From NCBI RefSeq assembly GCF_902713615.1, contig NW_024055447.1, positions 799,072 to 863,071 on the forward strand: DNA of 64,000 bases, in the 5' to 3' direction. Each line of letters begins with the position of its first letter. The first letter of the stretch is position 1. The notes under the pieces are model-generated. The model was not told where the DNA came from. It saw nothing but the letters and a program-made list of their open reading frames with translations, and did not search any database. This stretch comes from Scyliorhinus canicula. Its lineage: Eukaryota. The position numbers and the translations under genes are program-made. This document shows positions 9,546-58,767 of this stretch, piece after piece.

Positions 9546-10117
9546 TAGTTTCGGTTAATCTCCACCCTATGTGAGTGAAAATCGTTTTAGACCTTGTCAT
9601 AGAGTCATGGAGAGTTAGAGGTTTACAATACAGAAAGATGCCCTTCACCCACCATATCTGCGATGGCAATCAGGTACCTATCTATTCTAAGATAGTCCAT
9701 AGATTGTCTTCCTACCATAAAACTATAAGACACAGGAGCAGAATTCGACGATTAGGCCAATCGAGTGCGCTCCACATTCAATCACGACTATTATGTTTCG
9801 AAAAGTCTATCTCCTGCCTTCGTGCCATAACCCTTGATCCCTTATTAATCAAGAAACTATCTATCTCTGGTTAGAAAGAGGGAAAGATCCTTCGGCACTG
9901 CCACATCAAATCCTCACCACCCTCTTCAGCTCAGGGTAGACACAGGGTAAATGTTTCTCCACAGTTCTCATTAAACACTACAGGGTAATTGAATGCTCCA
10001 ATCACATTTTAGAGTAAAACTCCCTCTATGTATTCCAATTAATTGGATTCGATCCATTTAGTTGGAAGCCAATGGGGTGAGATTGCGCTGAGAGATTATA
10101 TTCGGCACATGTTGACT

Positions 10118-10395
10118 TCATAGAACATAGAACATAGAACAGTACAGCACAGAACAGGCCCTTCGGCCCTCGATGTTGTGCCGAGCAATGATCACCCTAC
10201 TCAAACCCACGTATCCACCCTATACCCGTAACCCAACAACCTCCCCCCCCCCCCCCAACCTTACTTTTTAGGACACTACGGGCAATTTAGCATGGCCAAT
10301 CCACCTAACCCGCACATCTTTGGACTGTGGGAGGAAACCGGAGCACCCGGAGGAAACCCAAGCATACACTGGGAGGATGTGCAGACTCCACACAG
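10118..10395 (-). mobile_element. HE1-like SINE, 5'-truncated
   Basis: Near-identical to the 3' part of the 8325-8710 SINE. Confidence 0.85.
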
Positions 10396-11600
10396 TTGTT
10401 GATTGTCATGTTGTCGATTAAAGGCAATGACCCATTGTGGGGAGACATGAGACAGAACCAGTTAGGAAAAAGGGACAGGTATCAGATGCAGGAGAACTGG
10501 AAAACTTTATGAACATATTTTGCATGTAACTATATTTCGAGATTAGAGGGAATCTTTCCTAATTCTGAACATGGATATCATGATGACCTTTTTCTCATAT
10601 AACTGATGAAGAATCAAATGTCAAAAACAATCATTACTGGAATCCGTTGATCTATTTGCGTGCTTGCCTCTATTTATGTGCTGTGTCGGTGGGGAAATAG
10701 TTGCTGTGCTTTTGTCAGTGTATAATCTAATCTGAGACTGCTATTTCTGTGTTTATTTACATAAACACCTCACTGGTCACAATGAAGTGTTTGCATCAAC
10801 AAAACGAGATAAACAGTCATTTATTGATTAGGTTCAACTTAAAATAGCGGTTTATTTTAAGAATATTGACAGTTGGTAGAAACGTATAGAAACATCCATT
10901 AGAACAGATGTTACTTAATTGAAATTAAAAAATAAATTTAAATTAAGTATTAATTCTGAAAGTTCTAATGCCTCAATTAATAAATCATCTTTAACCAGGC
11001 TGTTATTCCACTGAATATTAATTTAATTGAAACATTAACCGATTTAAAGGAGATAAATTAAAACATCTGGCAGAGGAGTGACCCATAGTCACGTTAATCT
11101 CAGATCTTTCAACATATTGCAACCTGCATTTTAAAATGTAAACGTTTGAAAAGAGCTTGCTTTTGTAAAACGCTTTACCCGACTTCAGGTCACCCCAACG
11201 CTCTTGAAACTCACTGATGTATTTTAGTTGAATTTAGTCACTGCTGTAATGTCGGAAACAGAGCGGAGAATTTGCGCACAGCAAGCTCCCACAAACTGAG
11301 ATGTGATAAGTGACCAGCTAATCTGTGATTTTAGTTCAAGAACGGATGTTGGTCCAAGATACTGGGAAAAGCAGCTCTGCTCTTTACAATTATGCCTGAA
11401 ATGTGAATCTGTTCCTCTCTCTGCTCACTGACCTGCTGAACAGCCTTTTGTTTTGTTTTTGTTTTACATTTCCGGAATCTGCAGCACTTTGCACAGTTTT
11501 TAACATTCATTCTCGGAATATAGCCCTCACTGGCAAAGTCAGCATTAACTGTCCATCCTGAGAAGCCGGATGTGAACCACCTTTTAGATAAGGTGCACTT

Positions 11601-36638: not shown

Positions 36639-36971
36639 CCTCACGGCACAGAGATAGGTGGCGGCGTCTGTAACATGCGCCTCTCTCACAGTCAGGATAC
36701 TGAGCTTGTTGTCTCCACCGATTGAAGCTGTAATCCTCCCGTGTTGATCGGTTCCTCTTGTGGCCATCACCAGATGCTGGGGTGCCTGGTTCGGGTACTG
36801 TCTGTACCAGAATACGAGGTCAAATGCAATGCTGATGGTGCAGTTCATGGACACATTACCCGCTTCACTAACAACCATCCACCCAGGGAGCTGCTGCACC
36901 TCATCTTCTCCGGTCACCACCGTGCAGATCAGAGTGAAACACAGCACAATGTCTGTGTGAACCCGAAGCAT
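36639..36971 (-). CDS. TRAV/TRDV: TCR alpha/delta V gene segment V-c (intact; leader apparently intronless)
   Basis: Single ORF MLRVHTDIVLCFTLICTVVTG-EDEVQQ...SMNC...FWYRQ...DAATYLCAVR ending at a consensus RSS. Confidence 0.9.
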
Positions 36972-37215
36972 TATCAGTTCTCACGGAATACCGAGCTCGG
37001 CTCAGAACCGGGAGGTGAAAACTATATTCTGAAAAATTAACCGGGAACCAAACACTAACTTCGGGTTCACCTAGTGACGTGTTGCTGTTGAACTAACTAA
37101 ATAAGCTGAGTATCCCTTAAGGTTTAACAACCCATTCTCCACGTTTCACACTGACACCAGCTCGCACTGTGAGCACACACCTGACCATCACCTTAAATAC
37201 TTTTCATACATCACA

Positions 37216-37229
37216 CTGCCCTCTGGCGG
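37216..37229 (-). promoter_or_regulatory. CTCF-like motif upstream of V-c
   Basis: CCGCCAGAGGGCAG, 245 bp upstream of the ATG. A CRE half-site TGACGT lies at 37075-37080. Confidence 0.55.
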
Positions 37230-37686
37230 TGTGAACTGGTAAGCGCATGGTGCAATTATTCACTTCAAATGCCAACAAGTTGCAGTTCACGATATAGTAA
37301 CGAATGAGGACATGTATTCCCACCTTCCTGCTTTAGCTATTTTATTGAGGGAGAGACTAAATCTCACCTTCATGTCTGCTGTCCAACGATTGCGGTGCCT
37401 TTTGTTCACTCACTCTTCCTGCAAAGCTGACCACTCGGTTTGACAAGACGAATATCCTGATGAAGGTCCTTATATCATTTTCCAATTTGAACCCGTCAAA
37501 TGCGAACTCGTCTATCTATCGGACATTTGTAACATCCCAACAGTAACAGCAGCAGTGAAAACACATGATAATAAATAACTTTTTAAAAAATTCAAGTTTC
37601 ATATGAGTGTTAAAATAATGTTTCTGTTCCCGCATTGGCTCCCTCCATCACATTTTCTTCACTAAAGATACTCACCCAGTCTCCCA

Positions 37687-37700
37687 CTGCCCTCTGGTGG
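37687..37700 (-). promoter_or_regulatory. CTCF-like motif
   Basis: CCACCAGAGGGCAG matches the core consensus. Confidence 0.5.
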
Positions 37701-38233
37701 CAGCTACAATCACTACAATGTGCGCTTAAAAATACCTGTCCCATTTCTGGAACCAAAGGCCATAAGACATAGGGGCAGAATGAGGCCATTTGGCCCGTCA
37801 CGTTTGCTCCGCCGGTCAATCACAGCTGATGTGCTTCTCATCCCCATTCTCCTGCCTTCTCTGCATTACCCTGATCCCCTTATTAATCAAGAAGCTATCT
37901 ATCACTGTCCGGTGCGGGGCAGCTGAGGCTCAGTGAGGTAAGAAACACTCATTTTTTGCAGCACAAGCTGGCGTAAGGGAAGTGTTTAAAGGGACGATTA
38001 AAAAGGTAAGTGGGACAGACAAGGCGGGGTATGGGACGGGGGACGGGGGGGGGGGGGGGGTTGATACAATGGTGTGTGGGGGGGGGGGGCCGTGATCGAA
38101 CAGCAAGGGAGGGGGTCTGCTCAGACCGGACGTGCGTCGGATCACAAGGTGGGGCCGGGTCAGACCAGGGGGCTCCGAAGGAACAAAGAAGAGGGAATGG
38201 GAGGCTCAGGAGTCGAGTGGGATCGGACGGAGA

Positions 38234-41245: not shown

Positions 41246-42132
41246 ATGTGGCCTGTTACTGTGTATTTCTTCCTCACAGCGGCCGCTCTTTTAACCGGTA
41301 AGTTCACAAGTTGCTCAACTCTTTCTGTCACAGCTTTTCCATACATGACATTCTGTCAGACAGGTCGCTCAATACAAGGGTGTGGGTGGTCGGACAAATA
41401 GATTGACCCCAACTTCGAAACGTCACCCGGATCTTGTTGGTCTCAGCACAGAACACTGTTTGCTGGAAGTCGGCACATTTCCCAAGGGAATGAGAGCGGA
41501 AGAGTTAGGCTGAGATTGAAGCTTCTCTGCTGCTCGTGAATGACCTTGACAAACAGCGGACTGTCAAACCCACAGGTTGTTAGTACTATCCGCTTCCAGT
41601 TACAGTGACTGAAGCTGAGGACCGGACCTCGTTAGAAAGACCGGACTAAAAAGATTTACAATTTCCAAACATTTTCCCGTTACAGCCACTAAGCTGTGGG
41701 ATATATATTTCTGTTCTGCTGTCTGTTCACTCTCTGAGGCTATTGTTCAGGATGACGGGATGGTTCTGCGGTATAGACTCAGTGAATTCGCATTATTTAA
41801 TTTAAAATCACTCTGGGTTCTTACAGGACATTGTCGAGGAGATTCCGTTTCTCAGACACCGGCTGCAGTCACAGTGAGTGAAGGAGAAGATGTTCAGTTA
41901 TTCTGTAATTATACAGCTACAAGCTCGAGCAATCCTTACCTATTCTGGTACCGTCAGTATCCCAGCCGATCCATGGAGTACCTGCTGCAGATTATAAATA
42001 CACCGGGAACATAGAGAGATACCCAGAGGACCGTTTTGCAGCGGAGCTCAATGATACAATCCGCACCGTCCTGCTGAATGTGTCTAAAGCAGAGCTGACA
42101 GACTCCGCGGTGTATTTCTGCGCACTGAGACC
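41246..42132 (+). pseudogene. TRAV/TRDV: TCR alpha/delta V segment V-d, single-base frameshift in CDR2
   Basis: Leader 41246-41297 MWPVTVYFFLTAAALLTG|gtaagt; V exon from 41827 GHCRGDSVSQ...LFC...FWYRQ...LLQI. After a 1-nt deletion near 41991-42000 the frame continues YTGNIERYPEDRF...DSAVYFCALR. Confidence 0.88.
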
Positions 42133-42171
42133 CACAGAGACACAGAGCTGGGCTGAACCTGTACAAAAACT
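42133..42171 (+). other. 23-RSS of V-d
   Basis: CACAGAG + 23 bp + ACAAAAACT. Confidence 0.92.
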
Positions 42172-44728: not shown

Positions 44729-45000
44729 TCTCACTGCATTGTAATACACCGCACAGTCTGTCAGCTCAACCGTGATAACACTGAGAGTGGTGGAGCCTTT
44801 CTCAAGGTCCAGGGATACTTTAATCCTTCCCTGAACTCTTTAACCTCCGAGTGTGGAGACCAGATACTCGGGAGCTTGATTGGAGAACTGCCGGCACCAG
44901 TCATTTGTAGTGAAAGTAGCGTTGTGATGAAGCGAGATAGTCTGACATTGTGTTACTCGAGATATCGATATCTGAAATGTCTCTGAATGACAAGGAACAG
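44729..45000 (-). pseudogene. TRAV/TRDV: TCR alpha/delta V pseudogene V-f
   Basis: After the ttttaacag acceptor: AVPCHSETFQ...QTISLHHNATFTTNDWCRQFSNQAPEYLV...GG*RVQGRIKVSLD...TDCAVYYNAVR. Both canonical Cys are lost, there is an in-frame TAA, and no leader was found. Confidence 0.85.
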
Positions 45001-46072: not shown

Positions 46073-46497
46073 GCTGCTTCGCACAGAGATACATTCCGTA
46101 GTCCTGGACCGTGCTCTCATCTATACAGATGGAAATGGACTTCTTTGTTCTGTCCAAGGACAGGGTGGAGCGTCCTTTGGTCTCAGTCCCCTGGTAAATG
46201 GAGGCGATAAATGTGGGAGCCCCTGTCAGTGTCTGTCTGTACCAGACTACGAAATAGCCAGAACCAATGGAGAGCCAGCAATTCAGTTCAGCCCGATCCC
46301 CTTCCCGAGACACCGCCTGCTCAGGGTGGGAGCTCTGATCCTCACACTGAACAGCTGGGAACAAAATAAAATCCACATAACCACACGGTGTTATGTGATT
46401 GTTAAAACAATGCATCAGATAAGAAAATAAACTCACCCAATATCAGCAGCTTCATAGTTCCAGCTGGAAACAGCTCTTTCCTGGGATTCCTGGTCAT
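46073..46497 (-). CDS. TRAV/TRDV: TCR alpha/delta V gene segment V-g (open frame)
   Basis: Leader 46497 (or 46455)-46437 ...MKLLIL|gtgagt, 82-nt intron, V exon 46354-46073 with AELNC, VVWYRQ and DYGMYLCAKQ. Confidence 0.87.
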
Positions 46498-58027: not shown

Positions 58028-58066
58028 AGTTTTTGTATGAGCCCCGCCGGCCCCTCATCCACTGTG
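58028..58066 (-). other. 23-RSS of V-i
   Basis: CACAGTG + 23 bp + ACAAAAACT. Confidence 0.95.
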
Positions 58067-58549: not shown

Positions 58550-58753
58550 GGTTCGTGTCTGAACTCCAGAAACAGAGACAGTTTTCACTGACTGTATCAG
58601 AGCTGCAATTGGAGAAGATGATGGAGAAGATGAAGATGAAGTTCTGGAGATGTTATGAGTTCGAATCCGATTTCTTCGCTCCGCCCACTTTCACGTCTTA
58701 AAACAGTCGCTTCCTCTGGAACTGGTCGGTGATGTTTGATAAGTGATCAGAGA

Positions 58754-58767
58754 GCGCCCTCCTGTGG
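58754..58767 (-). promoter_or_regulatory. CTCF-like motif upstream of V-i
   Basis: CCACAGGAGGGCGC, 205 bp upstream of the ATG; homologous to 32225-32238. Confidence 0.5.

Follow-up and report, generated by a model that had tools for sequence, protein, structure and literature searches.

Results

Gene structure at the locus

The window (the whole stretch of 64,000 nucleotides of Scyliorhinus canicula DNA analysed here) carries a TCR V gene on its minus strand, with the ATG at 36971 and a single frame running from 36971 to 36639, or 111 codons. The start context of this gene, hereafter the target, is gaactgataATGc; position −3 is an A, and 9 nt 5′ of the ATG stands an in-frame TGA (36983-36981). 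Its parts are as follows.

36909..36971, minus strand: leader (signal peptide), 21 codons, running straight into the V region; predicted cleavage after Gly21
36639..36908, minus strand: mature V region, 90 codons, EDEVQQ...YLCAVR, with Cys23, Trp41 (FWYRQ) and Cys104 (YLC)
36600..36638, minus strand: 23-RSS, with heptamer CACAGTG at 36638-36632, 23-nt spacer at 36631-36609 and nonamer ACAAAAACC at 36608-36600

The leader reads MLRVHTDIVLCFTLICTVVTG and places V at −3 and G at −1 of the predicted cleavage site; Val at −3 and Gly at −1 agree with the usual signal-peptidase rule. Its hydrophobic core has a best 9-residue Kyte-Doolittle mean of 3.10, compared with 3.12 in the spliced leader of one neighbouring gene. 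The V-set Ig domain was recognised by Pfam (V-set, E = 5e-9), and the MNC, FWYRQ and YLC motifs were read directly from the translation. Directly after the V end, the RSS matches the consensus at 7/7 heptamer and 9/9 nonamer positions with a spacer of exactly 23 nt; by our own arithmetic, chance would supply about 3e-5 sites so perfect per 128 kb. The preliminary description of this DNA had reported an ATG with A at −3 opening an unbroken frame from a hydrophobic leader through a V domain to a consensus 23-RSS, and the frame, the Pfam match and the RSS match bear this out. A look-up of the 158-aa ORF of the target in the assembly collection gave no match.

Five other RSS-bearing V genes lie in the window on both strands, with their RSSs at 32911, 35285 and 42133 on the plus strand and at 58066 and 56741 on the minus strand, the target's own being at 36638 (minus). 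With V genes on both strands, inversional rearrangement would be needed for part of the array. Four of these neighbours are intact, and in each of them a phase-1 intron (127, 127, 85 and 151 nt) separates the leader exon from the V exon. The gene with its RSS at +42133 (window 41800-42171) shifts frame partway through the V exon, has the heptamer CACAGAG (6/7), and is probably a pseudogene. The earlier statement that the other five intact V genes all have a phase-1 leader intron thus holds for four of them and fails for this frameshifted fifth.

From ATG to heptamer the target measures 333 nt and the neighbours 438-504 nt, and the target leader is 21 aa long versus 19-20 aa in the spliced leaders of the neighbours. 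Because its length fits these spliced leaders, the target leader has the appearance of a spliced leader encoded as such in the genome. At the protein level the target is about 30% identical to its neighbours, and with so low an identity we place it in a different family.

Two further V-like stretches were observed on the minus strand. At window 46075-46436 there is an open frame (…VVWYRQ…YLCAKQ) followed by a CACAGTG heptamer and a degenerate nonamer; at about 44735-45000 there is a V-like sequence with an internal stop in which Asn replaces the second Cys (…YYNAVR), and then CACTGTG, 23 nt and ACAAGAGCT.

Transcript evidence across the leader

Runs X1-X3 consist of assembled contigs that appear to derive from RNA; transcript starts and rare isoforms lie beyond the reach of such contigs. 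Within a 6-kb stretch, X1-X3 cover V exons and two high-copy repeats only. In both X1 and X2 a joint from 34829 to 34981 skips 151 nt bounded by GT..AG, which is the leader intron of a neighbouring gene; this joint serves as a positive control, and we therefore regard X1 and X2 as holding spliced RNA. The two high-copy repeats (32900-33500 and 37700-38100, one of them about 750 nt 5′ of the target ATG) reach depths from thousands to >180,000 in all runs, have many internal joints and A-rich loose ends, and are probably SINE-type elements.

Contigs over the target span 36545-36980, 36644-36985, 36649-36980, 36887-36980, 36954-37011, 36956-37014 and 36954-37072. Contig depth over 36900-37099 is equal to or greater than that of the V body, and is zero at 37100-37299. 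Among the joints listed for X1-X3 none lies within 36500-37300; the 6-kb stretch holds two more joints. Given the exon-like depth and the lack of any reported joint, the stretch 5′ of the candidate splice acceptor behaves as exon, comprising 5′ UTR and leader.

36972..37072, minus strand: 5′ untranslated region, at least this long, from RNA-like contigs; in-frame TGA within
36953..36959, minus strand: 'cacacag' candidate splice acceptor, unused by contig evidence; pyrimidine tract 11/20

These data bear on the possibility that the target is a conventional split-leader gene, in which the true leader exon lies further upstream and is spliced into cacacag|AC (36952) or gtgag|AA (36979); on that view the ATG and the hydrophobic stretch inside the exon would be incidental. 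Both AGs do exist, an exon from 36952 or 36979 would stand at offset 1 of the frame, as a phase-1 intron needs, and several contigs end at 36980 or 36954. However, the contig ends match the variant sites 36947, 36952 and 36953, where assembly graphs branch. The pyrimidine tracts are weak (11/20); for cacacag the comparison is with 12-16 in the neighbours (14-16 in A1, A2 and B; 12 in C). The stretch 36954-37072, which lies 5′ of both AGs, occurs in RNA contigs at exon-like depth and contiguous with the genome, and the AG at 36953 is absent from transcribed variants, which read cacacaTT at 36953/36952. Furthermore, four genes from two or more species have kept the ATG, the context around it and the hydrophobic leader (see below), whereas the sequence 5′ of the ATG lacks such conservation, and such splicing would yield a leader of double length. 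Taken together, these points make a hidden upstream leader exon highly improbable. The splice into cacacag|ACATTG at ~36953 that the preliminary description had proposed to look for is absent among the joints listed, and we reject it on the RNA contigs and on the variants, from which the AG is missing.

The V-body contigs listed carry 10-17 differences from the window, or about 3-4%, and the contigs listed are a few of >4000 contig pieces. Over 36954-37011 one contig has 0 differences from the window; transcription of exactly this copy is supported over the stretch 36954-37072. When the listed differences are applied to the target the frame stays open, with changes in the leader (D7F, V9L, V18E) and in CDR1; leader position 7 is Asp in this copy and Phe in the transcribed variants. 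At least two paralogues or alleles, ~96% identical, are therefore likewise transcribed unspliced.

It could thus be argued that this particular copy is unused or weakly used (an 'ORF' gene in IMGT terms), through rare rearrangement or a poor leader, and that its paralogues or alleles do the work. The divergence shared by all V-body contigs listed and Asp7 in place of Phe speak in favour of this. We consider it unlikely in view of the perfect RSS, the intact frame, the presence of all canonical V residues and the contig without differences over 36954-37011; moreover, the contigs listed are so small a part of the total that the exact V body may lie among the rest, and the variants may be alleles of the same gene from other individuals.

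One X1 contig (36545-36980) runs through a target-like RSS into downstream DNA (36545-36638). X1 contigs at 35285-35465 read through the RSS of a neighbouring V gene into downstream DNA in the same way. These read-through X1 contigs represent V transcripts of the unrearranged (germline) kind. In X3, one contig extends beyond the V end by 79 letters, the pattern expected of a rearranged transcript. The raw-read run X6 yielded nothing on the target gene.

Distribution of the single-exon structure among sharks

An exhaustive HMMER search returned three close relatives of the target (P0013, P0010 and P0016), and a word-based search added P0159. P0013 is a hypothetical protein of the bamboo shark Chiloscyllium punctatum with 57% identity to the target, P0010 comes from a JGI metagenome contig and is 65% identical, and P0159 represents a second C. 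punctatum gene of the same family. The corresponding loci are as follows.

C. punctatum L001: gene 1125-1493, 369 nt = 122 aa + stop
C. punctatum L003: gene 10001-10429
JGI contig L002: gene 341-874

In all three, gene length equals 3 x protein length plus the stop, so that each is a single ORF, and each ORF runs from the homologous ATG through CACAGTG, a 23-nt spacer and a nonamer. L002 (JGI metagenome 3300026616, contig Ga0262470_19728, 1 kb) is a shark germline V gene present as host DNA, and the 177-aa 'protein' assigned to it arises by reading on through the RSS.

At the DNA level the target, L001, L002 and L003 align without gaps from ATG to RSS. The sequence ctgataATG is common to the target and L001, with variants of it in L002 and L003. 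Nucleotide identity to the target was distributed as follows.

Leader: 62-75%, no gaps (3 relatives)
V region: 70-76%, no gaps (3 relatives)
RSS: 77-82%, no gaps (3 relatives)
100 nt 5′ of the ATG: 41-48%, gaps present
−260 to −101: 57-59%, 4-8 gapped positions (two bamboo-shark genes)

A chance ORF was rejected as an explanation of the frame, which is conserved in the four genes.

The remaining relative, P0016 (UniParc UPI0001F848D4), is a nurse-shark V-(D)-J-C cDNA fragment with the homologous leader MSQIYRFLLLLATLIYTEVTG|EDEV. In a maximum-likelihood tree the target and its four relatives formed a clade with 99/100 support, apart from the other V families of the window; this clade joined a Callorhinchus family with 84/90 support, with long branches nearby.

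In the comparison of intron presence in elasmobranch relatives, suggested at the outset, the two C. punctatum genes are single-exon from ATG to RSS. Of the two origins offered in the preliminary description, the second, a distinct intronless V family, is upheld by the single-exon relatives in C. punctatum (two genes) and on the metagenome contig. As for the first, precise intron loss by cDNA-mediated conversion, we saw no sign of a recent event of this sort confined to the target; the loss is older than the divergence of catshark and bamboo shark. Judged from these sequences, the intron-less state is a family trait older than the carcharhiniform/orectolobiform split and not an event in this copy, because both catshark and bamboo-shark members share it.

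Upstream of the target ATG we found two putative motifs, both assigned by their letters.

37075..37079, minus strand: CRE half-site CGTCA, 108-104 nt upstream of the target ATG (putative, by sequence)
37215..37229, minus strand: CTCF-like motif CCGCCAGAGGGCAGT, 14/15 match to CCASYAGRKGGCRSY, at −258 to −244 (putative, by sequence)
Window 37215-37229 (minus), about 32225-32239 (plus) and about 58753-58767 (minus); L001 about 862-876; L003 about 9754-9768: CTCF-like motif sites (13-14 of 15)

The bamboo-shark relative L001 has gACGTCAa at −96. Matches of 14/15 to the CTCF-like motif number just 5 in the whole window, both strands included, and the 14/15 motifs upstream of an ATG stand at −258 in the target, −263 in L001, −247 in L003 and −203 in neighbour A1. 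In the family A neighbours the motif is found at −203 and −218, and in families B and C at other positions. A CTCF-like motif (13-14 of 15) thus occurs 200-265 nt 5′ of the ATG in the intron-less family in two species and in the family A genes. Scanning of the window found no CTCF-like site beyond (3′ of) the target RSS. Of the earlier claim that a CRE half-site and a CTCF-like motif stand at neighbour-like spacing, the presence of both motifs stood, while the resemblance of their spacing to that of the neighbours proved only rough.

V type and chain usage

When the target was compared with PDB sequences, the best 60 matches were all TCR alpha chains, mostly TRAV12 and led by human TRAV12; by sequence, the target V is alpha-type. 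Neighbour family A is alpha-like as well: its best named match is a TCR alpha chain from a lizard, and the PDB matches displayed for it include no TCR chain type other than alpha. A bona fide nurse-shark Vbeta (P0160) gave no alpha matches.

P0016 links its V, by way of a D-like stretch and a beta-type J, to the start of C-beta. Among TCR chains, the J-C part shows likeness to beta only, and over 28 residues it matches the named nurse-shark TCR beta chain P0160 without a difference. This joining to C-beta argues against simple TRAV/TRDV membership of the target family; P0016 may stem from residence of an alpha-type family in the beta locus, from trans-rearrangement or from chimera formation during cloning. 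Neither the window nor the 20 kb of bamboo-shark sequence at L003 contains a J or C segment; at L003 an alpha-like V lies 2.6 kb downstream of the family gene. The multi-V matches of the representative search were gene-prediction fusions from lizards and teleosts and were uninformative.

Discussion

We read the target as a germline, rearranging TCR V segment belonging to a V family with leader and V domain in a single exon, and put the probability of this reading at roughly 0.85. That it rearranges we infer from its RSS and from the nurse-shark cDNA. The contigs show transcription from a point at least about 100 nt 5′ of the ATG and a primary transcript that needs no leader splice; the promoter is probably the gene's own. 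RAG-mediated joining via the consensus 23-RSS would then leave only the J to C splice, and the 21-residue signal peptide would be cut after Gly21.

As for the origin of the unsplit leader, simple retroposition of a rearranged mRNA was rejected because the RSS is present; on this point the preliminary description, which had drawn the same conclusion from the retained RSS, was confirmed by the perfect 23-RSS. Nor does the target have the germline-joined V(D)J structure of the TCR-mu Vj type, given that the RSS is present and no J motif follows it. In a second form of retroposition, a spliced germline V transcript would have been reverse-transcribed and inserted at a new site to found the family, with no loss at the original site. 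RSS-containing germline transcripts exist, so that such a retrocopy could keep the RSS. However, homology within the family reaches at least 260 nt 5′ of the ATG, past the observed RNA 5′ end, and includes the CTCF-like motif, which stands at a similar distance in intron-bearing neighbours; in addition, the target sits within the V array. We therefore rate the chances of this second form as low.

The most likely origin appears to be a single, ancient and exact loss of the phase-1 leader intron in situ, with later spread through duplication. Loss at its own site is favoured because the promoter motifs common to intron-bearing neighbours have been kept and because the leader length fits that of the spliced leaders. 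A plausible route would be recombination with the cDNA of a spliced germline (unrearranged) V transcript, still bearing its RSS; germline cDNA might serve as such a template since read-through germline transcripts were seen in X1. Alternatively, the leader intron may have been removed by an exact genomic deletion, or the lineage may be ancestrally unsplit, with no intron loss. We found no sequence signs that separate cDNA-mediated loss, genomic deletion and an ancestrally unsplit lineage.

Division of the leader by a phase-1 intron is regarded as a defining mark of all antigen-receptor V genes and has been used in tracing their ancestor; of the lineages with RAG-based receptors, sharks are the oldest. 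Exceptions to the standard V anatomy include TCR-mu Vmu-j and other germline-joined V genes, which are attributed to reverse transcription. The marsupial and monotreme TCR-mu Vmu-j lack an RSS, their V(D)J exons being already joined in the germline, whereas the target is unjoined and has a consensus RSS and its native promoter region. Conventional split-leader V genes, represented by the four neighbours, share with the target the V-set domain, the 23-RSS, a leader of ~20 aa and, some 200-260 nt 5′ of the ATG, a CTCF-like motif, and differ from it by their leader intron and their ATG-to-heptamer distance.

The split leader has been described, in a 2025 paper on the origins of shark antigen receptors, as canonical for every antigen-receptor gene (PMC12227049). 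In the chicken, leader and V share one exon in all but three of the 48 members of TRAV1 (Valpha1) (PMC10972964), and most genes of TRGV1 (Vgamma1) are single-exon and germline with an RSS (PMC8456604), while other V families of the chicken loci keep the two-exon structure (PMC10972964; PMC8456604). TRAV1-21, -47 and -49 are two-exon members of chicken TRAV1. A V-gene finding tool had to be adapted for the single-exon chicken genes (PMC10972964). The preliminary background statement that V genes nearly always split the leader, and that intronless ones are tied to retro-integration, overlooks these RSS-bearing Valpha1 and Vgamma1 genes (PMC10972964, PMC8456604) and needs to be amended to that extent.

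Like the target family, chicken TRAV1 and TRGV1 are RSS-bearing germline single-exon V families standing beside two-exon families. TRAV1 and the target are both alpha-type and have a (Q/E)VQQ start, the chicken mature start being QVQQ. Their identity, however, is about one third (by eye), no more than that between unrelated Valpha families, and for this reason we do not claim common descent. They differ further in that RSS scores are weak in many chicken TRAV1 genes and the target RSS is consensus, in that the chicken leaders have 19-26 residues and an MKFQW...-type start unlike the target's, and in that one group is from a bird and the other from a cartilaginous fish.

The closest family outside the elasmobranchs is the 'YLCAVE' family of Callorhinchus milii (UniRef A0A4W3..., P0001-P0009), with 40-47% identity when compared as proteins; it has the leader motif H-x-x-I-V-L-C in common with the target family. 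One may ask whether the unsplit leader is ancient in one alpha-type V lineage of elasmobranchs and chimaeras, perhaps including chicken Valpha1, and/or whether an alpha-type family serves the shark TCR beta chain; we regard this broader proposal as doubtful.

An RSS-bearing single-exon TCR V family is of a kind already known from chicken, and is found here in sharks; our literature search retrieved no report of an intron-less TCR V in cartilaginous fish. The shark family reveals no new mechanism, and its value lies in correcting a commonly stated rule and in its consequences for V-gene annotation, as V-gene finders requiring a splice acceptor will miss single-exon V genes. This conserved, transcribed shark family shows that the unsplit-leader exception extends beyond chicken. 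Should the ancient unsplit lineage prove true, the 'canonical split leader of all antigen-receptor genes' would never have been universal, and should the alpha-type family serve TCR beta, a V type would be used across chains. The family also offers a natural test of the role of the leader intron in V expression or in somatic hypermutation of shark TCR genes.
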